A program made the translations under genes and the position numbers. 64,000 nucleotides of DNA, from assembly GCA_002269645.1 (NCBI GenBank), contig NIVC01000236.1, positions 372,001 to 436,000 of the forward strand. Direction: 5' to 3'. Below are positions 3,801-57,424 of this stretch, one piece after another. Position 1 is the first letter of the stretch. Every line of letters starts with the position of its first letter. A model generated the notes under the pieces. That model searched no databases and was not told where the DNA came from. It saw only the letters and a list, made by a program, of their open reading frames with translations. This DNA is from Macrostomum lignano. Lineage: Eukaryota.

Positions 3801-6800
3801 GGCCACAACGCACAGAGCCTGGAACCAGGGCGGCAGCTGGTGGGAGAACCAGGCCAACGGAGTCGGCAGGCACTGGCGGAGACGGGGAGATAATCATGGC
3901 CTGAGTTCGGGACACAGAGTTTTGCATCCTACGAGCATTTACTGTAAATTTACTCTAACCTCTAAAAACTACTTGCAGTAGGAACATGTGCAGATTATTT
4001 GTTATTCCTCGGTATACACAGTATACCCAGCACTGCTTTGGCATTGCCAATGTCTAAACTGCTTCAGCATTGCCTGTGTCTGAACTGCTTCAGCATTGCC
4101 TGTGTCTGAACTGCTTCAGCATTGCCTGTGTCTAAACTGCTTCAGCATTGCCTATGTCTGAACTGCTTCAGCATTGCCTGTGTCTAAACTGCTTCAGCAT
4201 TGCCTATGTCTGAACTGCTTCAGCATTGCCTGTGTCTGAACTGCTTCAGCATTGCCTGTGTCTGAACTGCTTTGGCATTGCCTGTGTCTGAACTGCTTCA
4301 GCATTGCCTGTGTCTGAACTGCTTTGGCATTGCCTGTGTCTAAACTGCTTCAGCATTGCCTGTGTCTGAACTGCTTCAGCATTGCCTGTATCTAAACTGC
4401 TTCAGCATTGCCTGTGTCTAAACTGCTTCAGCATTCAGCCGACAGCCTGCAGCTCACCTGGGACTCGTAGTGCCAATCAAGCGCCGTGAGGCCCCACCAG
4501 GTGGGACAGCCGCTGGTGAGCTTGACCACACCCGAGGCCAGCATGAGGCGGAACAGCAGCCACTTGACGGCGAACATGCCCAGGCCGCTGCTGACCCGAT
4601 CGGAGCCCTCGATGGGCAGGCGGAGGGACAGGCCGATGGCCAGGAAGCCGGCCTCCAGCAGCAGGATGTCCCACTGGAACCACATGAACGTCTGGCCGAC
4701 GCTGAACAGTGACAGGTACAGCAGCCAGAGCAGGGCGTACACTGGCAGGCTGCCGAACCATGGCAGCGCGCAGGCGGCGAAGGCGAGCAGACAGCCCAGG
4801 CTCGCGACCAGTTCAGCCGCCTGAGCGTAGCTGAGGCCCAGCTGGGGGGCCAGGCGCAGCAGAGACGGCTGGCCGCTGAACAGCTGCTGGACCGAGTGAA
4901 CTTCTGCGACAGGACAGTGGCGCATGTGGGATGTTTGACGGGGTTCCGGCTACAAAGACTGTGATTGGATATACTATTATACTGTTATATATATACTATT
5001 TCCAGAAGTAGCTATAATGACAATTAAACATGATAAGCCAATAGTTTATAACTATGAGAATAAAAAATATTCATTAAATACATACCATCATTTGAAATGC
5101 TGGCATAGATAGGTAAAATGCCATTGTCTCCATATAATCCTGAAGGGAAAAAGTAAAAAGAATACATAGAATATAAATTAAAATTCGTTTAATCATTCTT
5201 ATAGGTAATATTTAATATAAAACCATTCATGTTACTATTTTCAAAATAAATTACAAATAAAAAATTCCATTAAAGTAATTAAATAAATCAAAATTGGTTA
5301 ACCTTTTGTACTAAGCTAAATGATCCAGGTAAACTTATTAACTGTCCATTTTTATGTCTATCTGAATATCTATTATGAGTAGAAAGACCTACACATTGGT
5401 ATAAATCTTGCTATATACATAGTATATATCTATAATAGTATACACTAGTGCATTAAGCCCCCATGGGGGCATTCGAATTCAAAATCCAAACATTGAAAGC
5501 ATGAAAATTGTTTTTTTGAATATTTGACCATCTTCTTCTAAATCTATTTTTCATTGTTTGAAATTTTATATATACTCTAGCAACATTGAAAAGTTGCCAC
5601 TATGGCGCCAGTGAGCAATTTCTCTTGGACTATTCTGAAATAAAATATACAAGAAAACTGATTGGGTAGCTTTAATCCATCCAACAAAACCCTCGCACAC
5701 CACATCCCTCTCACTTCATTCCTCAACTCAAGCCTGCCACGGCATTGCAAGTTGCGTCACTTACAAAGATGGAGAAGCTTACCTACACTCTAAAAATTGG
5801 CAACCACAGACTTTTTGATGTTACTGGGTATAAGCACACTATGACACCCAGCCCCTGATGGTGGGCTTTCAAGTAAAAAACTCAAACATTGAAAGCATTA
5901 ACAACTTTGTTTTTTGAATATTTGACCCACTAACAATTGGTAGAAATTTTATATACTGATTTGCCAAATGAATTTAAATCAACTGGGCCCATTAGCTACT
6001 GCCCACCATCTACAACTGCCCCACCCAGTGTTGTATTCATAAAATAAGACAAACAAAATCAGATCAGTTTAGGGGGTTGATAAACTTTAGTCCAGCTTTT
6101 TACCCCCCCCCAAGCACCCATTCTTTTATCAACAATAATAGAATTCAACCAACCAATCCCACAAATTGCAAGCCTGCCACACAAAGGGTCATAAAAATCC
6201 TTTTGCTTAATTGTGGTGAATGTACATCCTACACTGTACATTGGCAAAGGAGAGGCCTAAATGGTTGAACTGAGCAATTAAATTTAGAAATAGAGTGCCC
6301 ATTGAAAACATTAGGAAATTAATTTTCAAATATTTGACCCACTTCCCATTTGAATTTTTCATCAAAAAAAGTTATGCATAATCCCCAAAAAATTTAGAAT
6401 TTTAAAAAGCAAATTTGAAAAAAAAAATTGGTTAGATAGTTCTTGAAAAAATCAATGACAAACAGACAGACAGATAAACAGCATAAAATTAATACATCGA
6501 TTTATTTACTATTTGACCTTATCAATAAATAGTTCAACATTTTAAGAAAATGAGCCTAATTCATAAAAATACAATTGTAACTATCATATATGGCATTGCT
6601 AAGTTTTATTGCTAAAGGTAATATAAAGTTTGTAGAAATGGACAAACATGGAAAATGTTTTAAATTCTGCTATGTTGTGTATATAAAAACTGTAACAAAT
6701 TGTTTTTGTGCAAGTGTAATTAGTTAAGCTTATTTTATTTAATTTAGTTGGTTTAGTTAATAAAAACATTATCACCAGAAAGTAATTTTATCTTCTAGCA

Positions 6801-8832
6801 GACAAACTAATAACAGATATAAAGTGACTTAACCCCAATTTTAAATATAGTCAATTAACTTAAGGCTAAGTTAGAATTTTGGTTTGGGTCTATTTATAAA
6901 AATAATGCTTTATAATTACCTGGATTAAGGCTAATTTAAGAAAAATTGGAATTAAATTCAAATTTAAAAAATTCAAATTGAAAGGCTAAATTAAATCAAG
7001 CTAAAATAAGCTATAATTGAGGGGATAATTAGGGACTCCACCTTACAAGCTAAAGTTCCTAATTATCCCTTTGCTTGTTCTCTAGGTCCAATTTTTGTAA
7101 AAAAATTGCCAAATCTAGTTTCCTAGTGTCATTGTGAGCAGAATGATATATTATTTTTATACATAAGTTACTTGGGCTCCACTTTATGAACTTAAGTTAA
7201 AAAGGCCCTTTGTGCATTTTTGTTAAAATTTCAAATCCTTACCTTGTAAAAACATGCAAATCAGTTTTTTATTTTAATAGCTATCAATTTTCACAATTAT
7301 ATATACATGGAAAAGTTAGGACAACCATTGTGCCTATAATTGATAATGTAATTTTTTCAATTTTGATATGTCATATACCAAAATATTAAATATGTATACC
7401 AAAAGCCCAAAATCATTTTTTCTATACTAAAATATATGCCAAATTTTTTGAGTGTATCCTAGAAAATTTCTAGTGTATATACCTTCTTTCTGACTTTGCC
7501 TATTATATATTTATTAATTGTATCTTGATTTTATTACAGCAAATAAGGACCTACATAGACTTAAATAGCATTTTATATAGATAAAGAAATCAATTGGTAT
7601 ATTTTCATGCTTAAACAAATTTTAAACATTTAAATTAACTTTAAATATCAATAGTTTATATTATTTTTTGCTATAACAAGTTATTTGCCATACCCATAGT
7701 TTCATACATGCGCAACCCCCCTGATTTACACTGGCCATGCAACTTACTTTTTGACCAAAAATGCGACTTACCTGTGAAAAACCCTAAAGCAAGATTAACT
7801 CAGTTTTGGGTAAATGGCAGGAGTAACTATGACTGTCTTATCAGGCAAAAATGCCTAAGCATCTAATTAGTACTACATCCGTATTCTTTAGGGTGGCATT
7901 TTTGCGACTTACCCCTGGTCCACCACAATTTACGGTGGCCAGATTGGCAAGGTCGGCCAGCAGTTGCGCATGTATGCATAGTTTGGAAGGCAACATTTAT
8001 GCCAAGATTTCTTGATGAATAGGCCCTAACACAAATACTTGCCATTTTTTAGTATATTTTAGCATACATCTTAGTATATATGACACAGTGGAAAAATTTT
8101 GGCTTAGATCTATGGCATACCTATGTACATGTTAGAATCAAATAAAGTGACTTTTTATATAAACTATGCTATATGCAATGCAATACTATTAATATAGATT
8201 TATAGAACAAATAATAAAAAAAAATTTAAACTTTGTGCCCTAAATTTTTTCTCAATTGTTAGCAAACAAAAGTATCTAAAATACTTCTTTAATATTGTCT
8301 TTTCTCAGTGCATCATGCATGTTGCAAAAGTGCATACTTTTAAGATTATTATTTTGTATGAATAATAAATTCAAGAATAAAAGAGTATAACTTGCTCTAG
8401 TATACAAAGTTGAAAACATTTTTAGTCCTGGCATACAAAGGTGGTCCTATACTTTTTCATCCCACTGTACCTGGCATACACTAATACATAATCCGAACTA
8501 TGGGTTATTGGCCATATTAAAAAAGTTTATTTCAACTTATAATAATAGCATAGGATTAGTCTATATAACTGAGTTAAAATTAAAACATGTAGCAATAAAT
8601 ATTCCAATCAAAAAACCTAATAAAACACCTATTATATTATAGTTAATAAAACTATCAACTATATTATATTCCAAGAATCCAAAGCTAAATATTTAGCAAT
8701 ACTACAAGTTCCTACAAGTTAACTTGATTTAACAAACTTACCGGGCAGCTGTACATATATTGAAACAAATGCTATCAAATAAACGAAATTCAAGGCAGAA
8801 AGAAATCGATTAAAAACCATAACTTGTGACAT
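869..8832 (-). CDS. LMF2: Lipase maturation factor 2 homolog (multi-exon; one conserved micro-exon not found)
   Basis: Exons on minus with GT-AG and matching phases: 8742-8832 ([30 protein letters not shown]), 5086-5139 ([10 protein letters not shown]), 4458-4903 ([13 protein letters not shown]...[26 protein letters not shown]), 3720-3872 ([11 protein letters not shown]), 2593-2722 ([11 protein letters not shown]), 2392-2526, 2197-2302, 1898-2113 (NSYGLFR), 869-1477 (LVLEGS...[14 protein letters not shown]...RWWRR). These motifs match the LMF1/LMF2 family, with LMF2-type spacing. There is a phase mismatch between 1898 and 1477 (see findings). Confidence 0.93.
1495..1860. repeat. 21-bp minisatellite, LMF2 last intron
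   Basis: Tandem GGGAG(A/C)TCTGATGGCGACTGT. Confidence 0.9.
2830..3665. repeat. ~35-bp G-rich minisatellite, LMF2 intron
   Basis: Tandem CCCAGCAACTGAGGATCTGGGGGGAGTGGCGGTGG. Confidence 0.9.
4035..4432. repeat. 26-bp minisatellite, LMF2 intron
   Basis: Tandem TGTGTCTGAACTGCTTCAGCATTGCC. Confidence 0.9.
7703..7976. mobile_element. Non-autonomous hAT-type MITE, copy 1 (LMF2 intron 1)
   Basis: 14-bp terminal inverted repeats CATACATGCGCAAC...GTTGCGCATGTATG, flanked by an 8-bp target-site duplication CATAGTTT (7695-7702 and 7977-7984). An 8-bp TSD is characteristic of hAT elements. Confidence 0.9.
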
Positions 8833-9590
8833 TTTTGTTAAGTAATTAAAGCTGTTTTACTGTCTAGAGGTAAGTAGGGCCTAAAATTATTCAACAATAC
8901 AAGGCTGCAAGACTGGGCAAGACAGAAGGCTAATTTAAATAATGAAAAAATATAGACGTAGCTAATGTGCAAGACTGATGTTGTAAATTTTAGAGATTGA
9001 AATTCAGACCAAAATGGATTAATCTAAAAAACAGGGCCTAGACAGTATACATTAGATAAGATTCAAAACAGATAAATCGATCGAGTTTGATAAGAAAAAT
9101 TTTTGTTTCATAGAAAGCTTTTCGCTGAAATTTCGCCAATATGAGTTTTATTTAAACAAATATAAAATCTTAAACGGCCTTATGGCTACCTTGATTTATC
9201 CTAAGCAATTTATGCACAATGCAAGCAATGTATGTCGCTTCGATTGAGTTAAACAGTTGTTCTAGCAGTCCTTGTTCTGGAAATTATTTGATTGCATAGT
9301 TCTCGGAAATATCGAATCTGTGAACTTGTGAATATCACAACATCAGTGATGAGGACAGATTTGGCGATTATGCTTTAAAGTTTTTTTCAGAAATTTTCAT
9401 TCGGTTTTTATTGATTTATCGCTAGTAGTAAACATATTTTAAACGAAAATAGCAAGTAGAAGAATTATTACTTTAGTCAATTTCATTTAATACTATTTAT
9501 TGAGAAGCTTGACTTAAGTCCTAGACTCCTAGCTCCTAATCTTATCTTAAGTAAGTCTTACTGAAGTTACTGACTGCGACTGATTTCATA
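8833..9590. promoter_or_regulatory. Bidirectional promoter region between LMF2 (-) and QPRT-like (+)
   Basis: The two start codons diverge and lie ~760 bp apart. CpG dinucleotides are locally frequent here (e.g. ATCGAT, TTTCGC, CTCGGAAATATCGA) compared with the CpG-poor flanks. Confidence 0.7.
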
Positions 9591-12500
9591 ATGACGCATA
9601 TTACTTCTCTTAGTGCAATAAAGAACATTGTAAAACTATGGATCGAGGAGGATAATATTATAAGCAACTCTGGTGGAGTTTTTGTTCAATTTGATTCTAA
9701 TGCAAGCAGACTAAATTTTCACAACACTGGAGAAAATGATCAGACTTGTGAAGATGATACTGAAGTTAATAGTTTTAATGAACACCCTGTATTATGTGCA
9801 GTCATTTTTGAAACAAAAGGTATGTATATTGCATAGAACCTATAAAAAATTATTGGCATATGTCTATTTAGATTAGATGAAAAAGAAACTATTGCCTGGT
9901 CTGGGCATTTGATTTAATGAATAAAAATTTTATACTAATAATGAATATTAGTGCTTAGCTGCTTAAGCCCTATAAATATTAGAAGGCTTTTTTAAGGTCT
10001 ATAAAAATAAGTGATGTCTAATGACAAAGTCTTTATAGGATCTTATTAACTACTGTCTAGGGACTCTAGTTTTTTTCCTTAGTTAATTGGAAATTAACTA
10101 GTTTTTTAGTTAAGTTAAGTTAGTTAAGTTAGTTTAGGAAACGAATTAGTTTTTCCATTTGGTATAATTGTATTAATCCTAAAATTTTATTCTTTTTAGC
10201 TTGTATTCTTTAATGCCAACCCTTGATCTAAACTATATGGCATTCTTTTGGTTTACAATCACCTTCTATTTTGCCACTTTTGGTTTATGGTCACCTTATA
10301 TTTTGATCAATTGCAGCATAAAAATGGCATGTTCAAAACTAAAAACTGAAAAAAAATATGCAAAGTTGAAAGTGCACTTTGTTAGATGATGCTTATATAT
10401 TATTAGCTTCATACATGCGCAACCCCCCTGATTTACACTGGCCATGCAACTTACTTTTTGACCAAAAATGCGACTTACCTGTGAAAAAAACCCTAAACCA
10501 AAATTAATGCAGTTTTGGGTAAACGGCACAAGTAACTATGACTGTCTTATCAGCCATAAATGCCTCAGCATCTAATTAGTACTACATTGGGGTGGCATTT
10601 TTGCGACTTACCCCTGGTCCACCACAATTTACAGTGGCCAGATCAGCCAGGTCGGCCACCAGTTGCGCATGTATGATTAGCTTAGGTATACAATCATTTA
10701 AATGTATAACACAAATAGAAATGATTAGGGCCTATGAACTGAAACTGGGTTAAAATTAATATTGTATGTAGTGTATATACACTTATGGTAAAGGTATATT
10801 GCCAGCTTCAGTTTGCAATCATTTCAGTAGAGTGCATATATGGAAATGATTATAAACTGAATGTAAAGGGATATAAAGATGAGGGGCGATTTCAATGCCC
10901 TTGATCTAGAATGAGCAGCAGTTTTTTGCATGTGACTATATTTTTGTATTTGATATGCTTTTCTATAGCCAGCTTTGGTTCACAATCATTTCAATAGGCA
11001 ATATATGTTTAGGTGATTGTAAACTGAAAGTGATATATATAGGCTGCAAGCTCAAACTTGCAACTTGACAATTGAAATTATTTGACAAGCTTTCCTATAG
11101 CCAGCTTTGGTTTGTGATCATTTTAGTAGGCAATATACATGTTGCTGATTGTAAACTGAAGGTGAAATATAAGCTACAATAATCTTATCATCTTTTGAAA
11201 TAAACAGTCAGTTTGCTAGCTTTTTATTTTGTTTCATGTCAATTACAACTGTTTTTAGTGCTGATTGTCATTGTTTGAGCTGATGATCACTATTTAAAGT
11301 AATTGTTAACCAAAAGAATGCCAACTATATTTTTATCTATTTTATATAAAAATATAATTTCTATTTAAAAAACTTGACTTTAAAAAATTGAGAACTTGAA
11401 GTACCTGGTAGGGCATTTATAATATTGTATACATGTTTTATAATTACTTGTTTTTGCATATTATGTTTCTTAGAAAATCATATTTCAAAACCGCACTAAA
11501 AATAATTTTCTTTGTTTAACTTTTATGACATCCAAAAATGTTCTTGCAAAAAATTCTTTGTTATTGTTATAAACAGTTTATAATTTAGGTATAAATAGAT
11601 GCTCAGTGCAAGCCAAGAGAGACAACTTGCTGCCAACTATGAAGTAAGCAAGTTGCAAGATAATACAATTTGTTCTAAGTATTGAAATTGCTAGTTGCAG
11701 TGTTTGAAAGACTTAGTCATTTCCTTTAGAGTATCAGAAATCTGCTAAAAGGTGAGAGTTGCCTCAGGGCAAGGAAATTGCCCTGAAATTTGCTTCCTTA
11801 GCTCTTGCCTCTTGTATGCCAATGTATGCCAATAGACTAACATTGTATACAAAAAATGCCAAGACAACAATGAAAAAATACAAGCTATAGTTTAGACTTG
11901 CAATTCTTTTATTTTTACAAAAAAGTTAAATAAAAACTTGTCTTACATTTTACTGAACTATAAGAAACTTTTTTTACTTTTTTTGTTTTACTTTTTAATT
12001 TCTTAGTAAGTTGGACATAATTTTCAATCTAGTTTTTTTATCAAAAATTAGATATTCCGTCTATGCATGTGGAGACTATGCCAAATTTTAATTTGGTCAT
12101 TTTTTGTACATCAACTGTGTAAACTCATTGTAAGTTTAAAGCTCATTTAAAATAAAAAAATCACAAAAAATTAGTTGTAGGCCTAATATTTACCATAAAT
12201 ATATGAATTCTGGCTGTTTTTCCCCCCAACTGCTTTGGCCATGGAGATTTTGCCCTAGAGTACTTTTCCCCTTGTGTCTGCTTTGCTTACAAGTTACAAA
12301 CCAGTTCAGATAGGCATTTGGGTCACAATAGTGATTATTTTTTAATATATAAATAATATATTATACTCAAATATTGGTATATTTAGCTTCTCAAAGGTAA
12401 TTTTTATCAAATTTACCTGAAAAATATTTTATAATAATATAAACTCTGCAATACAAGTTATTACAATTTGTAATACTGTAAATATAATGTTCAAAAATTT

Positions 12501-14136
12501 AGTATTGTTCATGTTGGTGTTTTTATGAGTGTAAGTAAAGCAATTCTCAATGATGTAGAGATGTAGTCCATATATGTAAATGTAGATTGCACAGAATAAA
12601 ATCTGTTAACTTTCTACAAGCTAACAAATAATGCATATTGAGCATACATGGACCTATACTAGTTCGTGACTAAATTGACTTGGTTTTAGTTGTAAAAGTT
12701 TCAAGTTTAAAAATAATTTAACTAATGGAGCTATCAATTTTCAAAGCTGTATTTTTCGTTAAACTTAAAGAATCTCTTCTGACACTAATTTGAAGCTTAG
12801 CCTTTTGTGTACTAAGTATCTTTTAGTGACTGCTTTGTGATACTTTATGAAGTATTATATAGAAATGTTACTGGCAAAATTTTGACCAAGCTAAAGCACT
12901 TAATCTTGCATGCTATAAAAAACTTCAATTTCAAGATATGATTACCTACGAGCCCTCGTATCTTAATCTATCTACCAGCCTTCGCATTACTTGTTGATAG
13001 AAATTACTCGGATGCTAAATATTTTGGTTAACCAACTCTGCTCGCTCAGGTGTACTCGCTGGCGTCCCATTTGCCGATGCGTTGCTCACCCGTCTGCGCT
13101 GCGAAGCCAGCTGGTCAGTGGCTGAAGGCGCCTACATCTCCTCCGTGCCGCAGCGGGTGGCCACCATCAGCGGCAGCCCAGTCTGCCTGGCCAGGGCCCG
13201 CCGGCTGCTGCCAGCTGTGCTTTCCAGGGCGTCCGGGTTAGCCACCTATGCCAACAGGTGAGACTTCGATGGTCTAGTCAAACTGATCTCCAGAATCCCC
13301 CAAACTGAACTCCAGAAACAGTGTGTTAGTGTTGCGCAATACTGGCCTGAAAATATATTGCAGATTATGCAGATTAATGCCATAATCTGCAATATTTTTC
13401 CAGGCCAGCGTTGGCGCGTTGATTCTTGCAATCATGCCACCATGTTTTTGTGTACTTATTCTTGCATAATACTACTGGCAGTACGCCAGCCAGCATCGAG
13501 CAATACGAGTTAGCGACATGTTTGCCCTTCCCCTATCTCTGCCAGGTTAGTTGAAAAGGCCGCCCTGTGCGACTGGCCCGGCTCCGTCTGCGCCGATTCT
13601 GACAGCCGCTGCACGCCCGGCCAGCGCCTGCTGGAGCGACACGGCCTCCTTGTAGGCGGGGTCCGACCGTCTGCCTCTTCAACCGCGTCAACTGGCGGCG
13701 CTGTCGTGATTGTCGATACAACCGCAGCCGGCGGGGGCGGCGGCAGCGGCGTTGCGTCCGCACTGGCCGGCGCCAGGCGCTGCGCTGCTCCGTTTGGCCG
13801 GGTGGCCGCAGTCTGCGCCGATGAGGCCGAAGCTTTGCGCGCCTGCCGTCTCGGCGCCGATCTGGTGATGCTGGAGTGCTCCAGCGCCGAGGTGAGGCAT
13901 TGAGGCGCTTGGAGACTGTGTGCTTGTCAGAGATTCTGTACAGTGTCCTGTGTACGTGAGCCCCTGTACAGTGTCCTGTGTACGTGAGCCCCTGTACAGT
14001 GTCCTGTGTTTGTGTGTCAGCCCCTGTACAGTGTCCTGTGTTTGTGTGTCAGCCCCTGTACAGTGTCCTGTGTTTGTGTGTCAGCCCCTGTACAGTGTCC
14101 TGTGTTTGTGTGTGTGTGTGTGTATCAGCCTCTGTC

Positions 14137-14201
<65 letters not shown>

Positions 14202-16546
14202 AGCCCCTGTACAGTGTCCTGTGTGTGTCAGCCCCTGTACAGTGTCCTGTGTGTGTCAGCCCCTGTACAATGTCCTGTGTGTGTCAGCCCCTGTACAGTG
14301 TCCTGTGTGTGTCAGCCCCTGTACAGTGTCCTGTGTGTGTCAGCGGCCCTGTACAGTGTCCTGTGTGTGTCAGCCCCTGTACCGTGTCCTGTGTGTGTCA
14401 GCCCCTGTACAGTGTCCTGTGTGAGTCAGAGCCCCCTGTACAGTGTCCTGTGTGAGTCAGAGCGCCCTGTACAGTGTCCTGTGTGAGTCAGAGCCCCCTG
14501 TACAGTGTCCTGTGAGTCAGAGCCCCCTGTACAGTGTCCTGTGTGAGTCAGAGCCCCCTGTACAGTGTCCTGTGTGAGTCAGAGCCCCCTGTACAGTGTC
14601 CTGTGTGAGTCAGAGCCTCCTGTACAGTGTCCTGTGAGTCAGAGCCCCCTGTACAGTGTCCTGTGTGAGTCAGAGCCCCCTGTACAGTGTCCTGTGAGTC
14701 AGAGCCCCCTGTACAGTGTCCTGTGTGAGTCAGAGCCCCCTGTACAGTGTCCTGTGTGAGTCAGAGCCCCCTGTACAGTGTCCTGTGTGAGTCAGAGCCT
14801 CCTGTACAGTTTCCTGTGAGTCAGAGCCCCCTGTACAGTGCCCTGTGTGAGTCAGAGCCCCCTGTACAGTGTCCTGTGAGTCAGAGCCCCCTGTACAGTG
14901 TCCTGTGTGAGTCAGAGCCCCCTATACTTCCTCTGGTATCTTGTGTCCGCATTATCCAATGTTCAGCGCCTTACTCATCATCCAGGTCTGCACCGCCGCC
15001 GCACGCGCTGTCAAGGCCGCCCACCCCGGCACACTGGTCCAGGCCCGGCAGCTCGCCGCCTCTGACCTGGCCGCCTACTTTACTGCCGACATTGACGTCG
15101 TCTGTGTCGACGCCTCGCCGGCGCAGCTGCGGTCCGACTGGCCGGAGGTGGCGCTTCGACCCATCGCCGCTGGCACGGCTGCTTTCTCCGATGCCGCCGC
15201 CACAGCCGCCGTGGCCGCCGCCGCTGTAGCCGCGGCCGCGGCCATGCCGGCCAGAAAACGCAGGCGCTGCGCCTCGCAGGACTCGAACCCGCCGCGGCCG
15301 CCTACGGCACCCGTGCTCGGCTCCACTGCCGCCGCCACCGCCGCTGCCGCAGCCGCCGCGGTTGCCAAGCAGCCGCGCCTCGATCTGGCGACCTCGGCCA
15401 CCGGCAGCGCAGGCGTCGGCGGCGGCTCCAGCAATCCGACCACCCCGACGCCGCAGATGGTCAACAGCTGTCGGGAGCTCGTCCCGGTTTTCAACACCGA
15501 CCGCAGGAACTCGCAGCAGTCCGAACAGTCCGAGCAGCCGCAACAGCGGCGCCAGCGACGCGAGTCTCCGCCTCAACCGCCGCTGTCTGCCGCTGCTTCC
15601 GCCGCTGCGTCTGCTGCCGTCTCCGCCGCTGTAGCCGCCTCAGCCGCTAGGGCGGCCGCTGCCGTCGCTGGCGGCGCCGCACGACCAGCCGCTGTCCTAT
15701 CCGTCCCCTACGGCTTCCTTCGCGTCCCGGTCTCGGGCGTCGCTGGCACGCCCATCCGGATGGTAGCGCCGCAGAGTCGGGCGGCGGCCGCAGCGGCTGC
15801 TGCTGCGGCTGCTGCTGCTGCTGCCTACCGGAACGCGCAGCATCGGCAGCCGATGACGCCAGCCGCCGCGATGGCGATGCGATTCGGTTCTGTTGGCTAC
15901 GGCACATCGGTTTCCGCTGCCCAGCTGCTGATGGGGCCCTGGCTGTGCAAGTGAGTCAGCTGTATTCGTGTTTGCCCTGTCTCAGATCCCCGTCCCATCT
16001 CCAGCTCCTGTCTCAGATCCCCGTCCCATCTCCAGCTCCTGTCTCAGATCCCCGTCCCATCTCCAGCTCCTGTCTCAGATCCCCGTCCCATCTCCAGCTC
16101 CTGTCTCAGATCCCCGTCCCATCTCCAGCTCCTGTCTCAGATCCCCGTCCCATCTCCAGCTCCTGTCTCAGATCCCCGTCCCATCTCCAGCTCCTGTCTC
16201 AGATCCCCGTCCCATCTCCAGCTCCTGTCTCAGATCCCCGTCCCATCTCTTGTTCCTGTCTCAGATCCCCGTCCCATCTCCAGCTCCTGTCTCAGATCCC
16301 CGTCCCATCTCCAGCTCCTGTCTCAGATTCCCGTCCCATCTCCAGGTCCTGTCTCAGATCCCCGTGCCATCTCTTGTGCCTTTCTCAGATCCCGGTCCCA
16401 CCTCTCCAGCTTGTCTCAGATTCTAAAAAGCTCACATTACAGCCTCTTCATCATCTTCACCCCGTCGCCCCCACAGAGTGTGCCGCGGTGCCAACATGTA
16501 CACTACAGTGTGCCGGCACTGCAGCCGCAACCGGGGTCTGTACTAG
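9591..16546 (+). CDS. QPRT: QPRT (quinolinate phosphoribosyltransferase)-like protein, catalytically degenerate, with low-complexity tail, basic NLS-like motif and C-terminal RanBP2-type zinc finger (~605 aa)
   Basis: Exons 9591-9819, 13050-13257, 13546-13891, 14986-15950 and 16477-16546 are all GT-AG with continuous phase (1818 nt = 605 aa + stop). The peptide gives IVKLWIEED...ETK/GVLAGVPFADALLTRLRCEASW...LSRASGLAT...WPGSV...TPGQRLLERHGLLVGG...GADLVML...VKAAHPGTLVQA...DIDVV, colinear with QPRT. The tail contains PARKRRR and ends W-L-C-K/V-C-R-G-A-N-M-Y-T-T-V-C-R-H-C. Confidence 0.8.
10410..10675. mobile_element. Non-autonomous hAT-type MITE, copy 2 (QPRT-like intron 1)
   Basis: Same TIRs and internal sequence as 7703-7976, with a different 8-bp TSD ATTAGCTT (10402-10409 and 10676-10683), which shows an independent insertion. 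Confidence 0.9.
13940..14925. repeat. ~30-bp minisatellite with embedded (TG)n, QPRT-like intron 3
   Basis: Tandem CCCCTGTACAGTGTCCTGTGTG(AG)TCAG(AG); (TG)n microsatellite at ~14100-14200. Confidence 0.9.
15978..16400. repeat. 31-bp minisatellite, QPRT-like intron 4
   Basis: Tandem CTCAGATCCCCGTCCCATCTCCAGCTCCTGT. Confidence 0.9.
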
Positions 16547-16924
16547 CAATGGACCCCGCGTGACCAGCAAGGGCTGGTGTAAGTTTCTTCAAGCAATAAA
16601 ATCAGATATGAAGGTCACCGCTGTAAGATGTTTTGAGACTGGAGATTTTTAAAACTGCATTTTTTATAAGTCGCTAGGCTCTGTTTGGCTATAAATTTTC
16701 CTTTCTCACATTGCAAACCCTACTGCAAGTAGTATTATTATTAATACTGCAAGCAAATCGTTTTCTGTTCTAGTTATACCGAAGTTAATTGTTCTTAACT
16801 GATTATTTAATTTAATCTCCGCGTCTCTGCAAATGACATTGTATTGTATACCTGCTATGCTAAATGACTCTTGACTTTGAAAGTTTGGGGTGGGCCATGT
16901 TCCTGGGAACTATATGCTTCTTGC

Positions 16925-17510
16925 TCCCTGATCCTTCAGCGGCTGCTGCTACCCCCTCCCTGATCCTTCAGCGGCTGCTGCCACCCCCTCCCTGATCTTT
17001 CAGCGGCTGCTGCTACCCCCTCCCTGATCCTTCAGCGGCTGCTGCTACCCCCTCCCTGATCCTTCAGCGGCTGCTGCTACCCCCTCCCTGATCCTTCAGC
17101 AGCTGCTGCTACCCCCTCCCTGATGATCCTTCAGCGGCTGCTGCTACCCCCTCCCTGATCTTTCAGCGGCTGCTGCTACCCCCTCCCTGATCTTTCAGCG
17201 GCTGCTGCTACCCCCTCCCTGATCCTTCAGCGGCTGCTGCTACCCCCTCCCTGATCCTTCAGCGGCTGCTGCTACCCCCTCCCTGATCTTTCAGCGGCTG
17301 CTGCTACCCCCTCCCTGATCCTTCAGCGGCTGCTGCTACCCCCTCCCTGATGATCCTTCAGCGGCTGCTGCTACCCCCTCCCTGATGATCCTTCAGCGGC
17401 TGCTGCTACCCCCTCCCTGATCCTTCAGCGGCTGCTGCTACCCCCTCCCTGATGATCCTTCAGCGGCTGCTGCTACCCCCTCCCTGATCTTTCAGCGGCT
17501 GCTGCTACGC
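16925..17510. repeat. 32-bp intergenic minisatellite
   Basis: Tandem CTGATCCTTCAGCGGCTGCTGCTACCCCCTCC. Confidence 0.9.
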
Positions 17511-18347: not shown

Positions 18348-21300
18348 TCAGTCAACGTTGAGCTTGGTGAAGGTGCCCTGGATACCAGTGGTCGCGTCCG
18401 CCGCGCTGTCCTCGGTGCGCAAGTAGTCCTTGGTCGTTGGCAGCCGCTTGGATTCGTCAACCTCCATCTCCTGCCGCTGAAGGCGCCACTCCCTGTGCAT
18501 CCGCTCGCTGCCGAAGTTGTTTCTTGTCCATTCCATCAGCTCCTGCAGGGTGCCGTTGCTGCCGCCGAGCTCCTTGGGCAGCAGACGGTCGGCGTCCTGC
18601 TCCCCGATGACTTTCCTGAGCCTGGCGTAGTCCTTGCCGACCTTGTGCAGCTTCTTCTTGAACTTCTCCTTGAGAAACGGCGCGTTCTTGATCAGGGTGA
18701 AGATCACGTCAAAGAACGCCGGCTCGTTCACAAAAATGACAGCTTTAGTGCGATTGGGACTGGCGTCCTGCCAGTTGCGCATCAGAGAGAAGAAGTTCTT
18801 GCGGTTCTCGAAGAAGCTCAGTTGATTTCGATTGGACCGGCTCATGTCAATCAGGACCTTGATGCCGTTGATCTGGCTGTACTGGTCCAGCTGCACCGCG
18901 TCCACTGACATGTACATGCAGCGGATCAGCTGATCGAACGTCATCTTCTGCTGGTCCCAGTAGCCCATGTTGGACACGTAGACTCCCTCGCCTTCGCTTG
19001 TGTGTCCGAGAAACACGTGGAAAGGATGGCTGAGGTACTCCTGCCGAAGGAAGTGGCGTAGGACTTCTGAGCCTCTGTTTGCCAGAAAGTTGGCTAAATA
19101 GTAATCAGCCTCACCTTAACCTCTGGACTGTCCACAGAAGGGTAGTCAAACCATGACGGCGTGCCCTTGGGCGACTTGCGGATGGTCAGGTAGTTGTCCA
19201 GCAGCATCTGAGCGCGGCTCTGGTCGAACTTGGCCACGCGAAGGAAGCGCAGCAGGAATCGGTCGTCTGCGGAGCGAAGTGATTCGATGCGGCTTAATCC
19301 TCATGTGTGTTGGGCAAGACACAAATTCGCGTAAATTCGAGCAAAGTAAAAAAATCCCATTTTCGGAGCCCAATAATGACGAAATATTTCGCAAGTTTTC
19401 GCACTTCTGGTGGCAATAGTGCTGTTTACTATCTGTAGAATTGACTTTAGACTTTGGTCTTCCGTCTGTTTTCCTGTCTAGGGCAGGCAATGCTGTTCAC
19501 ATTGCAGTGTCTGGGGTTACCTTTGACCCCGGCGCTTATCTGCTGCTGCAGCCAAGAAAGTGACTATTTGAGTCTGGGTTGAGGCATATCTCTGAGTCTG
19601 TTTACTTTAGTGCTCAAGGCATAATTGAATTTCTCCAGATTATGTAAGTCTCTAAATTTAGTTCTTATATCTGTTTTCAACCCAGTGTAAAAAGCTTGTT
19701 GCTATACGCGACGCCATCCTAAACTGCTGTTTATTTTTCAGCAAATTTCAAATTCGCTTCAATCGCCATGGTAGCCGATTTTGTTCAACGGGTCACCGCC
19801 TATCCGGCCGTGGCCTCCGCCTGGCAGCGGGCCGCCAGCTGCTACGACTGGGCCCTGTCCGCCAGCCCCAGCGTCCGCTCCGCCGCCGGCTTCACCGAGG
19901 GCGGCCTGCGCCGTGCCGCTGCCACCGCGGCGCCGCTGCTGGCGCGCTTCGAGCCCGCTGTGGCGCGCCTGGACCGCCTGGCCTGCGCCCAGCTGCTGGA
20001 CCGGCTGGAGGCCCGCTGTCCGGCCGTGAAGGAGGCCACTGCCCAGGAGCTGGTCGCCTCGGCGCGCGACGCTGTCCAGCCGACGCTGATGGCACCGGTG
20101 AATAGCGCCGTTGCCAAGGTGACGGGGTGGGGCAGTGGCCATGCTGTGATGCGGAAAGTTGGCACGTCGCAGAAGAGAAACCTGCGCTCAATAAGGCCAT
20201 CGAACTGCACCGAATAGGGCCACCAGGGTTGCTTAGGATGGGGCGCAGAATAGCTATGTGTGACTCTCGTGCTGAAGTCCCGGGTTCGATAACGGAAATT
20301 GTCCTTAGGGCTTGCCGTGCTATTCACACCATTGAGGTCCAGCCTCTAAACTGCAGAGTTTGTACATGCCCGGCGATGAGAACATTTCTGGACTGCAGTA
20401 CACCCTGTGTGAGCGGGTCGGGCATGACTGCTTGTCTGCTACGTTAGGGTTAGGGGATTCAACAAGTACACTGATTCGGGCTAATGCCGCATGAATGCCT
20501 GAACTCGTCTTCGCCATATCCGCAAATCCGCAGGCGCAGTCGGCCAAAGCCTACGGCTTGGCCAAGTGCACGCGGCTGTCGGAGGACAGCGGCGAGCTGG
20601 TGGTGGCCTGGGTTGACCGCTGCGTGGACCACTACCTGCCCGAGGACGGCGAGGCCGGGAAGGAGCGGCGTCAACAGCAGCAGCAGCAGTCGGAGGCTCC
20701 TGAAGGCATTCGCCAGAAGCTCCGTCGCCGACTGTTTAGCCGCGTCGCCGACTTTGCTGTCCGACTCTCCGCCGACGATGGCGATGACGAGAATCAGCAA
20801 CGCGCGGCTGAAGCGGACGGAGTCGCCGCCGTCCAGCTGGCCGCCTTCGCTGCGGCCGCCGCCGCTAAGCGCCGGGCTCGAGCCGCCTCGCTGGCCGGTG
20901 CCGAGTTCGCGGCTGCCCGACTGCCCGACCTGGAGACTCTGCCTGGCGCTGGCCGCGTGGTGGCCTGGCTGGTGAGCTGGGATGAGCCTGCGACTTGAAT
21001 TCCCCTCTGGTGTCTTGGATTCCCCTCTGGCGTCTTGAATTCCCTTCTGGTGTCTTGGAATTTCCCTCTGATATCTTGGATTCCCCTCTGGTATCTTGGA
21101 TTCCCCTCTGATATCTTGGATTCCCTTCTGGTATCTTGGATTCCCCTCTGGTATCTTGGATTCCCCTCTGGTGTCTTGGATTCCCCTCTGGTGTCTTGGA
21201 TTCCCCTCTGGTGTCTTGGATTCCCTTCTGGTGTCTTGGATTCCCCTCTGGTGTCTTGGATTCCCTTCTGGTGTCTTGGATTCCCCTCCTGGTGTCTTGG

Positions 21301-24380: not shown

Positions 24381-25600
24381 TCAGTCAACGTTGAGCTTGG
24401 TGAAGGTGCCCTGGATACCAGTGGTCGCGTCCGCCGCGCTGTCCTCGGTGCGCAAGTAGTCCTTGGTCGTTGGCAGCCGCTTGGATTCGTCAACCTCCAT
24501 CTCCTGCCGCTGAAGGCGCCACTCCCTGTGCATCCGCTCGCTGCCGAAGTTGTTTCTTGTCCATTCCATCAGCTCCTGCAGGGTGCCGTTGCTGCCGCCG
24601 AGCTCCTTGGGCAGCAGACGGTCGGCGTCCTGCTCCCCGATGACTTTCCTGAGCCTGGCGTAGTCCTTGCCGACCTTGTGCAGCTTCTTCTTGAACTTCT
24701 CCTTGAGAAACGGCGCGTTCTTGATCAGGGTGAAGATCACGTCAAAGAACGCCGGCTCGTTAACGTAGATCACGGTGCGGATTCGTACCGGAAACGCATC
24801 CTGCCAGTTGCGCATCAGAGAGAAGAAGTTCTTGCGGTTCTCGAAGAAGCTCATCTGGTTCCGATTGGCCTGGTTCATGTCAACCAGGATCTTGATCCCG
24901 TTGATCTGGCTGTACTGGTCCATCTGCGCCGCGTCCACCGACATGTACATGCAGCGGATCAGCTGTTCGAACGTCATCTTCTGCTGGTCCCAGTAGCCCA
25001 TGTTGGACACGTAGACTCCCTCGCCTTCGCTTGTGTGTCCGAGAAACACGTGGAAAGGATGGCTGAGGTACTCCTGCCGAAGGAAGTGGCGTAGGACTTC
25101 TGAGCCTCTGTTTGCCAGAAAGTTGGCTAAATAGTAATCAGCCTCACCTTAACCTCTGGACTGTCCACAGAAGGGTAGTCAAACCATGACGGCGTGCCCT
25201 TGGGCGACTTGCGGATGGTCAGGTAGTTGTCCAGCAGCATCTGAGCGCGGCTCTGGTCGAACTTGGCCACGCGAAGGAAGCGCAGCAGGAATCGGTCGTC
25301 TGCGCAGGGAGAAGGGTTGTTCTCTTTGTTTCTAACTTCAAGCTCTCTTCTCGCTACTTACGAGTAGGCGGTCATCAGATTTTCACTTTTTACTTTCGGC
25401 TGAGTTGGAAAGGCACAAACTGCTCTCTCACCTGTCCGGCACCTAAGGTGCGGCATGCTGCCCAGCCAGCGTCTCAGGCTGGCGATGTGGGCCGTGACCT
25501 GCGCCGGCTTCTCGTTGAGCTCCTTCTCGGCCCGCTTGATGAACCTCTTTTCGACGCCGTCGTAGGTGTACGGCCCGTCGTCATCCACTGCCGAAGCCAT
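24381..25600 (-). CDS. CRAL-TRIO/Sec14-like lipid-binding protein, copy B, ~337 aa
   Basis: Exons 25432-25600, 25148-25299 and 24381-25073. Same structure as copy A; exon 2, intron 2 and most of exon 3 are identical to copy A (offset 6033). Confidence 0.9.
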
Positions 25601-47434: not shown

Positions 47435-49842
47435 TCATGCTTCAGACGGTGTCTGCTTCTGTTTATCCTCTGCCTGCTGCCGCTGCTGCAGCTGCTGCTG
47501 GCCGCACAGATCCTCCTGCCGGTTGTGCAGCCGGCTGGTGAAGAGCACAATGGGCGTGTAGGCCAGGCACACCACGCACAGGATGACAAACAGGTAGGCA
47601 AATCCCAGGTGCAAGAAGATCGGCCCGGCTGCGAAGGCTCCGAAGGCCGTGGCGATGCTGAAGGAGGCGTGCGCGATGCAGGACACGGAGCCGTACACCG
47701 GCGTGTGCCGCCGGTCCACCAGGTGGCTGAGCAGCGGCAGCAGCGTGACGTCCAGCACGGCGATGCTGGCGAACACCAGGCCGATGGGCAGGGTGCACCA
47801 GGCCTTGCCTGGCATGAAAGGCAGCAGCGCGCACGCCAGGCCGCCCAGCACCAGGCCGCCGGCCGCCACCCAGCCGCGCCAAGCGGGCGCCCGGTTGCAC
47901 AGCCACACGCTGGCCACGGTGGCCGCGAAGTGAAACGGCAGCGTCGGCAACCAGACGAGGCCCTTCTGCGTGTCCGTGGCCTCGTAGCGGTGGTGCATCC
48001 AGATGCCCAGCGTGGCGGCGAGGCAGTTGTGGGACAGGTTGGCCACGATCAGGCCGCCCGCGCACGCCGCGATGTGCGGGTCCGTCAGCAGCCGCCACAG
48101 CGGCGTCGGCTTCGGCCGCTTCGCTGCGACTTCCTCATCGTTGTCGTTGTCTGGCACTACGAGATGATCGGCGTCGATGGCAGCGGGCGACGACGTCGGG
48201 GAGGAAACCGCAACCGCGTCGCCTGCGTCCTGCTGCTGCGGTTGCTGCTGCTGCGATGGCGGCGGGTGCTGCGGTGACTGCGGGGCCGCGGGGCCTGAGC
48301 GGAGAGGAATATGGCTGCTGTAGATCTAGAGACCCGAGTGCTGTAAATCTAGAGACCCGAGTGCTGTAGATCTAGAGACCCGAGTGCTGTAAATCTAGAG
48401 ACCCGAGTGCTGTAAATCTAGAGACCCGAGTGCTGTAGATCTAGAGACCGAGTACTGTAGATCTAGAGACCCGAGTGCTGTAGATCTAGAGACCCGAGTG
48501 CTTTAGATCTAGAGACCCGAGTGCTGTAGATCTAGAGACCCGAGTACTGTAGATCTAGAGACCCGAGTACTGTAGATCTAGAGACCCGAGTGCTGTAGAT
48601 CTAGAGACCCGAGTGCTGTAGATCTAGAGACCCGAGTGCTGTAGATCTAGAGACCCGAGTACTGTAGATCTAGAGACCCGAGTGCTGTAAATCTAGAGAC
48701 CGAGTACTGTAGATCTAGAGACCCGAGTACTGTAGATCTAGAGACCCGAGTGCTGTAAATCTAGAGACCGAGTACTGTAGATCTAGAGACCCGAGTGCTG
48801 TAGATCTAGAGACCCGAGTACTGTAGATCTAGAGACCCGAGTGCTGTAAATCTAGAGACCGAGTACTGTAGATCTAGAGACCCGAGTGCTGTAGATCTAG
48901 AGACCCGAGTACTGTAGATCTAGAGACCCGAGTGCTGTAAATCTAGAGACCGAGTACTGTAGATCTAGAGACCCGAGTGCTGTAAATCTAGAGACCGAGT
49001 ACTGTAGATCTAGAGAGCCGAGTGCTGTAGATCTAGAGACCCGAGTGCTGTAGATCTAGAGACCCGAGTACTGTAGATCTAGAGACTCAAGTGCTGTCTC
49101 TAGATAGGAGTTCCTTTTAAGAAGCCCCCAGAAGCCCCCAGAAGCCCCTCGACCGCGGCTCACCCTCGGGGCGGCCGCCCCGCTGCCGCACCAGGCCCTG
49201 CCGGAGCAGCGGCACCAGCAGGCAGGCGGTGGCGGCGAACATGGGCAGGTAGGCCAGGAACACGACCCCCCGGCCCGTCCGCTCGTAGATGAAGCCCCCG
49301 TAGGCCGGGCCCAGCGCGTTGGCGGAGAACAGCACGAAGTTGGCGATGCCGATGGCCCGGTTGCGCATCCGCAGCGAGGTGAAGCAGGTCGCCACCTGGG
49401 CGAGGCCGCTGGTGCCGATGGCGGCGGACCCGGCGCCGTTGACGGCCCGGGCCAGCAGGAAGACCCAGTAGGAGTCGCCCAGGCCGTACAGCAGGATGGA
49501 GGTGCAGTCGGCGGCGATGCCCACCAGGAGGATGGCGGCGGGGAACAGCAGGTCGATGAGCTTGCCGATCAGCGGGTTCATGGCGATCTGCACCAGGCCC
49601 TTCAGCCCCACCAGGAAGGCCGACTGGATTTTCACGTCAGACTCGGCGCAGGCCTCGGAGCTGGAGTTGAAGGCGCCCAGGAGGCCGTCGGCCGTGTCGA
49701 CGTGGTCGACGGCGGCGCGGCACAGCTGGTCGTGGACGATGGGGATGATGACGGTGGTGAGCATCTGGTCGCTGAAGAAGACGGCGCTGACCAGGACAAC
49801 GGCCAGGACCCGATGCCAGCGGCCCGGCTGGCGGCCCGGCAT
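47435..49842 (-). CDS. SLC18-family (VMAT/VAChT-like) MFS transporter, divergent, ~512 aa
   Basis: Exons 49164-49842 and 47435-48294 (phase 1). Motifs SDQMLTTVIIPI, LKGLVQIAMNPLIG, LLARAVNGAGS, GPAYGG, LLTDPHI, LVDRRHTPVYGSV align with VMAT LDNMLLTVVVPI, SKATVQLITNPFIG, LLIARSLQGIGS, LLKDPYI, LVDLRHVSVYGSV. Confidence 0.88.
48318..49095. repeat. 23-bp minisatellite filling the SLC18-like intron
   Basis: Tandem GTAGATCTAGAGACCCGAGT(G/A)CT. Confidence 0.92.
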
Positions 49843-50599
49843 CTCCTGCGGTCAGGCGGCTGTCAAGGACTGCCAAGCCGATAGCGAGCCTCGGATTCTC
49901 TCTGGATTGGAGAGCCGCTGTCTTGTTTTTTGTAGTTGGGTCTGGCTACAAATGACGCCCGCCTTTCGGCCCTTTTCTACCGCTGGTGAGGGCTGCGCGG
50001 ACAGTCTGAACGGGACTGAGGCGCGCTCAGCTCACAGGCCTGTACACTCCGGCCCTGCCTGTCAAAAATACCTTCTCTCTCTCCTGCCAGCCTGCCTGTC
50101 GGCTCCGGTCTGACCCCGCATTCACCTGGCTGACTGTCCCTGCAGCCACCCCCGGGGGCAGGGAAAACCTGAAGCCTTCAGTACTTCTCCGTTGGGCCTC
50201 TCGGTTTAACCAGCGTGCACTTTAAAAAGAGCGAGAATATGAAATTTTCTATACGAGGACAGAAGCAGGAGTGCACGGCGAACGGTAGCCCTGTTGGTGT
50301 CCCGTTCCCGTCTCGGTGAAAGTTCAACTGTCTCATGAGAGTAGCATGACAGCCGCTGCAGTTGATGGAGGAACCTGCGAGATGCTGGCGAAAATTTTTA
50401 CCTCAAGGATCAGATAAAGAATCCAACTCATGGCCGCAGGCCAGGTGAGAGGAAAGGAGAGAGGAGATAAGAGAAGTGAGGCGAGAGAGGAAAGGCGAGA
50501 GAGGAGATAAGAGGGGAGGGAGGAGAAAAGAGAGGAGAGAGCTGAGAAGAGACAAACCTTGAACGGGCCGGATTGCTATTGCCGAGGGTCGGATAGAGA

Positions 50600-52566: not shown

Positions 52567-56982
<4,416 letters not shown>

Positions 56983-57424
56983 GGCTGCGAGGAGTTGTGG
57001 CCGGGGGCCGGCTTCGGGAGAAATCCCGGTCGGGTGGAGCGGCGGCGGTCTCGGTGAGTTTTATAGCCGAGGCGAGAAAGTTGAGTGGAAAAAACTTCAG
57101 AGAGCTCAATGGCTCGGTGATTTCAAAGCAATTCGCTTGTCAAAGGCGAGTTGGGGCGTGGCCGAGCTTTTAAATTTTAACTTTTTTATCGCACAAAGCA
57201 ATTTGTTTATTGACACCTTCGCTTTGTTTGCATGTCTTGAGACAAGTGTTGCTCCTCAAGGGGTGCGAAGGGTTTCCCTTTCATCTTTGAGTTCCCAGTG
57301 GGTTTTTGAGATGGAAAACTGGACGACACAAATTAAAAAGCTTTTTAACAGTCGATCTTTGTCTCAGTGAAAGCGGAGTTGAGTAGTTCGAGTAGTTCAG
57401 GGTGTGGCCTCAGCTCAATTCAGG

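Follow-up and report, generated by a model that had tools for sequence, protein, structure and literature searches.

A QPRT-derived family of flatworm proteins with a zinc-ribbon tail and its very divergent, predicted member in Macrostomum lignano

In this report, we describe a gene in a 64,000-nucleotide stretch of the Macrostomum lignano genome (GenBank assembly GCA_002269645.1, contig NIVC01000236.1, positions 372,001 to 436,000 of the forward strand; hereafter the window, with positions counted from its first letter), whose predicted product joins a degenerate quinolinate phosphoribosyltransferase (QPRT) domain to a low-complexity tail and a four-cysteine finger. The gene is a very divergent member of a family of predicted flatworm pseudoenzymes that derive from QPRT and carry a zinc-ribbon tail, a family that is visible in the databases and has gone undescribed. 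Its five predicted exons lie on the plus strand and join to 1818 nt, corresponding to 605 codons followed by TAG. The parts of the gene are as follows, with a slash marking each splice junction.

9591..9819, plus strand: exon 1, codons 1-76 and 1 nt, with the start codon and the QPRT N-terminal helix IVKLWIEED; AT-rich, with a GC content at third codon positions (GC3) of 0.21
9820..13049, plus strand: intron 1, 3230 nt, AT-rich, phase 1, within the Gly codon of K-G/VLAGVPF
13050..13257, plus strand: exon 2, 208 nt, QPRT N-terminal domain, GVLAGVPF...LSRASGLATYAN-R
13258..13545, plus strand: intron 2, phase 2, within the Arg codon of AN-R/LVEK
13546..13891, plus strand: exon 3, start of the QPRT barrel, whose motifs are degenerate
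13892..14985, plus strand: intron 3, phase 0 (E/V), taken up by a minisatellite of ~31 bp (13936-14927) together with a (TG)n run
14986..15162, plus strand: first part of exon 4 (the whole exon being 14986-15950), end of the QPRT barrel, aa 262-320
15163..15939, plus strand: tail part of exon 4, ~260 aa rich in Ala, Ser, Pro and Arg and predicted to be disordered, with PARKRRR at 15247-15267 and a run of 15 Ala
15940..15950, plus strand: start of the finger, first knuckle W-L-C-K (2 nt of the last codon), then the donor AA/GTGAGT
15951..16476, plus strand: intron 4, 526 nt long, phase 2, splitting the codon that follows the first Cys of the finger, filled by a 31-bp minisatellite (15976-16421)
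16477..16546, plus strand: exon 5, remainder of the C4 finger, (K)VCRGANMYTTVCRHCSRNRGLY, then TAG

All four introns are of the GT-AG type, and their phases (1, 2, 0 and 2) are mutually consistent. The donors read AAG/GTATGT, CAG/GTGAGA, GAG/GTGAGG and CAA/GTGAGT, the last of these (AA/GTGAGT at 15950/15951) overlapping the in-frame TGA at 15952-15954, and the AG of every acceptor, including that at 16476, is preceded by a pyrimidine-rich stretch. The ATG at 9591 is the first one downstream of an in-frame stop located ~13 codons upstream. Exon 1, with 76 open codons in surroundings of 31% GC, stays open in 0/3000 shuffles, and exon 4, with 321 codons at 73% GC, does so in 1.4% of shuffles, its other five frames carrying 2-6 stops. 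Together with the homology to QPRT given below, these figures place the gene above chance expectation. The best tblastn match of exon 2 is to Echinococcus, at 48% identity. Within the QPRT N-terminal domain, exon 1 encodes an insert of ~30 acidic and Asn-rich residues (QFDSNASRLNFHNTGENDQTCEDDTEVNSFNEHP; aa 23-56, 9657-9800), predicted to be disordered by its predicted local distance difference test (pLDDT) score of <50 and present in the Macrostomum protein only, not in its relatives or in canonical QPRTs. Removal of this insert as an in-frame intron of exon 1 was considered and rejected: only weak donor/acceptor pairs were available, and none of them improved the alignment. A tblastn search of the 64-kb window found no second QPRT-like copy, leaving a single QPRT-like locus.

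The N-terminal half of the predicted protein is related to QPRT. Against Pfam, QRPTase_C (PF01729) scores 24.8 bits (cut-off 23.1) and QRPTase_N (PF02749) 26 bits, just below its cut-off of 27, and a phmmer search of the PDB returned human QPRT with an E-value of 2.4e-30 across aa 68-302. An AlphaFold2 model, derived from an alignment of 26 sequences, reaches a pLDDT >90 for most of aa 60-320, and Foldseek placed pig and human QPRT on top (E ~1e-24, target-normalised TM-score 0.77-0.79, root-mean-square deviation 2.2-2.9 Å), with all of the top 48 matches being QPRT/NadC. The model displays the type II phosphoribosyltransferase fold, that is, an N-terminal alpha/beta domain and an open alpha/beta barrel. 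Based on this homology, the high pLDDT and the uniform Foldseek matches, residues ~60-320 retain the QPRT two-domain fold. Relative to canonical eukaryotic QPRT/NadC (EC 2.4.2.19; human 2JBM/4KWV, pig 4I9A), the protein shares the same two-domain fold at 28-33% identity and is colinear from the N-terminal W-x-x-E-D helix through the end of the barrel; canonical QPRTs measure ~290-300 aa, whereas the Macrostomum protein adds a 280-aa C-terminal extension with a zinc finger and the 30-aa insert in the N-terminal domain. The initial annotation, made by a model from the letters of the window, had described the N-terminal half as colinear with QPRT, and the sequence and fold searches agree with it. 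The motifs that it quoted, namely DSRCTPG, IVDTT, RVAAVC, MLECS, QARQL, PARKRRR and W-L-C-K-V-C-R-G-A-N-M-Y-T-T-V-C-R-H-C, were all located.

The same layout is found in at least six other flatworm species, comprising the trematodes Calicophoron and Dicrocoelium and the cestodes Echinococcus, Taenia, Mesocestoides and Hymenolepis: a degenerate QPRT, a low-complexity tail of 180-270 aa and a CxxC-x9/10-CxxC finger in the last ~28 residues. Because the full-length query was swamped by poly-Ala words (one match), the relatives were sought with a domain-only query and a family profile instead; an exhaustive HMMER search returned no relative above 35% identity. Five of these proteins are listed here.

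Calicophoron daubneyi, P0036 / CAL8092355.1, 537 aa
Dicrocoelium dendriticum, P0041 / CAH8449879.1, 512 aa
Mesocestoides corti, P0167 / VDD74806.1, 577 aa
Echinococcus multilocularis, P0171, 536 aa
Hymenolepis microstoma, P0173, 483 aa

Members of the family carry degenerate motifs at the positions of TRKTTPGF, HRxDL, LKDNH, LDNF and EASGG, and their N-termini are colinear (M-x3-S-x2-SA-x-K-x-[IL]V-x2-W[LI]-x-EE) with one another and with that of Macrostomum, whose W17 in exon 1 is invariant or nearly so among the relatives. In a neighbour-joining tree, the Macrostomum protein groups with the five neodermatan proteins in 195/200 bootstraps. Its position as sister to these proteins and its low identity to them would, tentatively, suit a free-living or early-branching flatworm. 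Compared with the neodermatan entries, it has 26-29% identity in the QPRT domain and different surviving pocket residues; its tail is Ala-rich and intronless, whereas theirs are rich in Gln, Asn, Ser, Pro and Gly; and its finger has a spacer one residue shorter and, alone in the family, a Trp before the first Cys. In the databases, the relatives are named either "quinolinate phosphoribosyltransferase" (automatically) or "unnamed protein product". The initial annotation knew of no described protein with this architecture, and its suggested search of flatworm proteomes for the same fusion found it in trematodes and cestodes. The claim of novelty consequently does not hold for public proteomes, where at least six flatworm species carry the architecture, and survives for the literature, in which we found no paper on a flatworm QPRT-like protein of this architecture, nor on a QPRT-derived pseudoenzyme.

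Several annotations of the family are shortened, among them the gene models of Taenia solium, H. diminuta, H. weldensis and Rodentolepis nana. At the T. solium locus (L005, MIEF01005501.1), the orthologue is annotated as two genes (6001-7904 and 9867-11745), encoding a 328-aa 'nicotinate-nucleotide pyrophosphorylase' and a 258-aa domain-less protein, and tblastn with the Echinococcus query reads them as one gene with tail and finger. The models of H. diminuta, R. nana and H. weldensis also appear incomplete.

Intron positions were compared by mapping the relatives' proteins on four genomic loci (L001-L004), those of Echinococcus, Mesocestoides, Calicophoron and Dicrocoelium, and refining each junction until it read GT-AG and translated exactly; a fish QPRT of the canonical kind (L006) was compared as well. 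Intron 1 (phase 1, in the Gly codon of G/VLAGVPF) and intron 2 (phase 2, in the Arg codon of A-x-R/L) occupy identical sites in 4/4 relatives and have no counterpart in the fish QPRT. Intron 3 (phase 0, before [EV]-[LC]-x-x-x-A) is common to all four relatives and the fish QPRT (...DNFxPx/EL), indicating that it is ancestral, and the fish gene also has the extra intron of the trematodes. Exon 2 measures 208 nt in Macrostomum and in three of the four relatives; the remaining one has 205 nt. The finger intron, of phase 2, interrupts the same codon (C-R/x-C) in both trematodes, with a last exon of 67 nt as against 70 nt in Macrostomum, and has been lost in cestodes, which lack it. Since the fish QPRT lacks introns 1 and 2, these two together with the finger intron tie the Macrostomum gene specifically to the flatworm family, and the trematodes' own phase-2 intron within that finger codon supports the junction 15950/16477. 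The 5-exon, phase-consistent reading frame of 605 aa that had been proposed, including both of its long-range junctions, is thereby upheld by its GT-AG introns, their consistent phases and the matching introns of relatives, and the gene is, as predicted from these features, intact and spliced.

The active site was examined by aligning the protein with 12 canonical eukaryotic QPRTs in MAFFT, using the numbering of the human QPRT sequence, which is consistent with the PDB alignment strings. Invariance in 12/12 canonical QPRTs is seen at fourteen positions (R102, R138, K139, H160, R161, K171, D172, H174, E201, D222, N223, S248, G249 and G250), of which only R102, D172 and a single Arg from the R138/K139 pair are left in the Macrostomum protein. 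In human and pig QPRT, the carboxylate pocket consists of R138, H160, R161 and K171, the ribose is held by E201 and D222, and the phosphate by K139, N223 and Q274 along with the main chain of G249, G250 and G270 (PMC3633916); quinolinate and nicotinic acid mononucleotide (NaMN) are bound by H160, R161 and K171 (PMC4726147). In Macrostomum, the carboxylate pocket is replaced (H160 by S, R161 by A or T depending on the alignment, K171 by V), as are the ribose and phosphate ligands (E201 by A or V, D222 by E, N223 by C), and the phosphate loop EASGG (S248-G249-G250) reads QARQ with a one-residue deletion. Within the motifs of exon 3, TRKTTPG has become DSRCTPG, HR is missing, LKDNH reads IVDTT, KIEVEC reads RVAAVC and MLDNF reads MLECS. 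The neodermatan relatives retain other pocket residues (R161, H174 and E201), such that there is no overlap between the survivors in the Macrostomum protein and those in its relatives. Nearly all ligand and catalytic residues of canonical QPRT are replaced on this scaffold, as the initial annotation had concluded from a manual alignment, and the Macrostomum protein is very likely devoid of QPRT activity.

The tail of the Macrostomum protein is 32% Ala and has a pLDDT mostly <50, from which it is predicted to be disordered. Near its beginning, in a low-confidence and likely disordered region, the basic cluster RKRRR (aa 351-355, within PARKRRR) fits the classical pattern of a monopartite nuclear localisation signal. 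One K-[KR]-x-[KR] motif per tail is present in 6/6 proteins, 31-50 aa past the end of the domain, with the relatives carrying the clusters PKKTRL, SKKLRL, AKRLKQ, IKRFKS and AKRQRT; judged by pattern and position, this cluster is a probable nuclear import signal. The earlier description of a low-complexity tail with such a basic cluster is consistent with both the composition and the location of RKRRR. Other colinear tail motifs, apparent in the MAFFT alignment, were discarded for want of statistical support in a test of profiles against shuffles, the single basic cluster excepted. As there is no detectable similarity between the Macrostomum tail and those of its relatives, homology of the tails is argued from position and composition only.

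The finger, completed by exon 5, has the form W-x-C-x2-C-x3-N-x5-C-x2-C. Its four Cys are invariant in 7/7 family sequences, and the relatives share C-R-x-C-G-x-x-N-x6-C-R-x-C-R-x-x-[LI]-R, with Hymenolepis slightly different and lacking the Asn. The RanBP2-type consensus is W-x-C-x(2,4)-C-x3-N-x6-C-x2-C, and its ubiquitin-binding NZF subtype has a T-F dipeptide after the second Cys and a hydrophobic residue downstream. Held against this consensus, Macrostomum has a spacing of x5 rather than x6, and the relatives have x6 but lack the Trp. No Pfam match to zf-RanBP (PF00641) was obtained at E<=10 for the Macrostomum protein or five relatives, with either whole proteins or isolated fingers, which weakens the RanBP2 label without excluding it, since very short domains are hard for hidden Markov models (HMMs). 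The fingers of relatives instead give sub-threshold Pfam matches to DUF7577 and to the generic ribbons Zn_Ribbon_1 (PF13240) and DZR (PF12773), the latter at 16-23 bits against a cut-off of 25, and the Macrostomum finger reaches only E 0.015 against Zn_Ribbon_Prim. Searched against the PDB, a profile of the family finger matches eL40 (E 0.0026), a DUF35 ribbon (0.0065) and the Npl4 NZF (0.086). An AlphaFold2 model of the finger alone shows a beta-hairpin and a short helix with pLDDT ~75, for which Foldseek found no significant structural neighbour. The T-F dipeptide of NZF fingers is absent: its place is taken by R-G in Macrostomum and by G-S, G-T, G-A, G-M or R-L in relatives.

Purifying selection acts on this family and is strongest on the presumably non-catalytic QPRT body. 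The ratio of nonsynonymous to synonymous substitution rates (dN/dS), estimated by the Nei-Gojobori method with our own script within the relatives rather than on the Macrostomum lineage, is 0.064 for the degenerate QPRT domain between Echinococcus and Taenia (dS 0.71, 266 codons); in the same pair, the tail gives 0.32 and the finger 0.20. Between Echinococcus and Mesocestoides, where synonymous sites are saturated, the proportions of synonymous and nonsynonymous differences are 0.76 and 0.145, respectively. The initial annotation had named a dN/dS near 1 as the mark of a decaying pseudogene; at 0.064 in the degenerate domain of these cestodes, the value lies far below that, which argues that the family is not decaying. 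According to a 2026 preprint, the whole kynurenine pathway has been lost in flatworms except basal Rhabditophora, and the parasites would therefore retain the QPRT-like gene without a supply of quinolinate.

The gene straddles a break in base composition. Exon 1 and intron 1 lie in a ~8-kb block of 28-33% GC (5000-13000; GC3 of exon 1 = 0.21), exons 2-5 are at 67-73% GC (13000-16600; GC3 = 0.76), and the change takes place in the last ~100 nt before exon 2. A 31-32-bp minisatellite of its own fills intron 3, intron 4 and the 3' flank in each case (13936-14927, 15976-16421 and 16924-17508) of 14-24 copies that are 93-94% identical, and the whole window is rich in such arrays. The unit of the intron-3 minisatellite contains GTGAGTCAG, the 9-mer of the true exon-4 donor at 15951, so that consensus 5' splice sites recur ~24 times inside intron 3. 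Elsewhere in the window, the following genes and open reading frames (ORFs), all of ordinary metazoan kinds, were recognised; an Rfam scan returned nothing at gathering thresholds.

4431-4949, minus strand: exon-sized ORF of LMF1 (lipase maturation factor), E 4e-25
18351-19115 and 24384-25148, minus strand: CRAL_TRIO copies, nearly identical 255-codon frames ~6 kb apart with the lipid-binding domain of that name, Pfam E 5.5e-20
47438-49851, minus strand: exon-sized ORF sequence matching a major facilitator superfamily (MFS) transporter, E 5e-16
52570-57060, minus strand: exon-sized ORF sequence matching a rhodopsin-family G protein-coupled receptor (GPCR), E 4e-9
58194-59558, plus strand: divergent, intronless alpha-tubulin, a 454-aa ORF with Tubulin and Tubulin_C

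The CRAL_TRIO pair is a recent tandem duplication. The GPCR region is broken by a long low-complexity stretch at ~53.2-56.6 kb, with 25% GC and a GC skew of -1.0, and the alpha-tubulin has, by eye, an unusual N-terminal loop and acidic C-terminus; a look-up of its exact sequence in the public collection gave no match. No synteny was found with the cestode locus, where the neighbours are Rpb6, SH3 and FBXL, as compared with LMF1 and CRAL_TRIO in Macrostomum.

What the QPRT domain now does can be weighed from these observations. The initial annotation raised the possibility of a metabolite sensor, in which the degenerate pocket would still bind quinolinate, phosphoribosyl pyrophosphate (PRPP) or NaMN and be coupled to an activity of the tail or finger. 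A fully retained fold, the strong constraint on the QPRT domain and the persistence of some pocket residues (R102, D172 and one Arg in Macrostomum; R161, H174 and E201 in relatives) would all suit such a role. Yet the survivors of Macrostomum and its relatives do not coincide and no pocket residue is conserved across the whole family, the SGG phosphate loop is absent and both ribose ligands are changed in Macrostomum, and quinolinate is no longer made in the parasites that still carry the gene, their pathway to it having been lost (2026 preprint). The sensor is for want of a family-wide pocket residue disfavoured and, in our judgement, improbable; the ancestral active site has probably not been reused in this manner. 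The same lineage-specific replacements bear on the idea that the protein is still an enzyme, either a phosphoribosyltransferase or a related catalyst with a new substrate, an idea that can draw on the strong purifying selection on the cestode domain and the intact barrel. The residues that hold the ribose phosphate in every type II phosphoribosyltransferase examined are nonetheless replaced, and because they are replaced differently in each lineage, relaxed constraint on the pocket fits better than new conserved chemistry, making retained catalysis very improbable. Least credible of all is a decaying pseudogene, or a chimeric model with a non-coding GC-rich tail and last exon, to which we attach hardly any weight. 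Its attraction is that exon 4 is at 73% GC with only 2-6 stops in other frames, that the tail has no detectable sequence homology to relatives and that the gene model was read from genomic DNA; it would have to account for ~300 colinear codons over four exons without frameshift or stop despite ~70% divergence, an AT-rich exon 1 that is open where none of 3000 shuffles stays so, four conserved intron positions and phases including that of the finger, the same order of domain, tail and finger in six other species, and a family dN/dS of 0.06-0.3.

The identity of the finger can be judged in a similar manner. A true RanBP2/NZF module, binding single-stranded RNA, ubiquitin or Ran, would match the C4 pattern and the Asn three residues past the second Cys, features that the Macrostomum finger and most relatives (C-x2-C-G-x2-N-x6-C-x2-C) have in common with the fingers of Npl4, TAB2, ZRANB2 and FUS/EWS/TAF15, which also often adjoin low-complexity regions, and the Npl4 NZF is among the weak PDB profile matches. 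Against it, no member scanned matches zf-RanBP, generic zinc-ribbon families score as well or better, with the eL40 and DUF35 ribbons ranking above NZF, the Trp is confined to Macrostomum with its x5 spacing, Hymenolepis lacks the Asn, the ubiquitin-binding T-F is missing, and the fold search with the finger model returned nothing significant. With no zf-RanBP match, eL40 and DUF35 ahead of NZF, and no T-F, the finger is best called a putative generic C4 zinc ribbon; a RanBP2-like nature is possible, and a genuine RanBP2/NZF module seems unlikely. Of the finger proposed initially, the four Cys completed by the last exon stood, and the 'RanBP2-type' label found no support.

The reading that we prefer, and hold to be somewhat probable, is that of a non-catalytic, probably nuclear, oligomeric scaffold belonging to a flatworm-wide QPRT-derived family. 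Under this proposal, the protein would no longer make NaMN, and its QPRT body would act as a folded scaffold, probably dimeric or hexameric. An oligomer is proposed because QPRTs are dimers or hexamers, with active sites at the subunit interfaces (PMC3633916, PMC4726147). The single K-K/R-x-K/R cluster at the start of the tail would carry the protein into the nucleus, where the terminal zinc ribbon, rendered multivalent through the oligomer, may bind a nucleic acid or protein partner.

Several points weigh against this proposal. The five-exon model was read from genomic DNA alone, exon 4 may hide in-frame introns, and the searched libraries held no identical or near-identical protein. In the pocket, R102 and D172 are kept and D222 has undergone a conservative exchange, to E. 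A profile of the five relatives' tails scores the Macrostomum tail no better than shuffles; the finger is short, with a spacer one residue under that of relatives, a score of 5.5 bits against their profile (a value that 40/1000 shuffles reach) and low confidence in the full-length AlphaFold2 model; and the neighbour-joining grouping may be aided by long-branch attraction. Moreover, that the protein is inactive, forms oligomers, enters the nucleus and binds a partner through its finger is in each case a prediction made from sequence.

Pseudoenzymes generally keep an enzyme fold under selection after the loss of catalytic residues and join it to new interaction modules. As far as the literature searched shows, QPRT would be a metabolic enzyme fold new to pseudoenzymes. 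With the architecture and introns common to Macrostomum and Neodermata, and almost no pocket residues in common, the loss of catalysis and the fusion appear to predate the split of these lineages. We tentatively suggest, as a possibility short of an even chance, that early in flatworm evolution a QPRT (or a duplicate of it) became a non-catalytic, nuclear and multivalent zinc-ribbon protein, so indispensable that strong selection preserved it in parasites without the tryptophan-to-NAD pathway, and that this flatworm-specific family may be the first group of pseudoenzymes to derive from QPRT and may act as a regulator in RNA or chromatin biology. Tapeworm and fluke entries named "quinolinate phosphoribosyltransferase" are very probably not that enzyme, which affects reconstructions of NAD synthesis. 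As a strongly conserved and flatworm-restricted protein, it is a candidate for functional work in Macrostomum, planarians, Echinococcus and Fasciola, where RNA interference is feasible.

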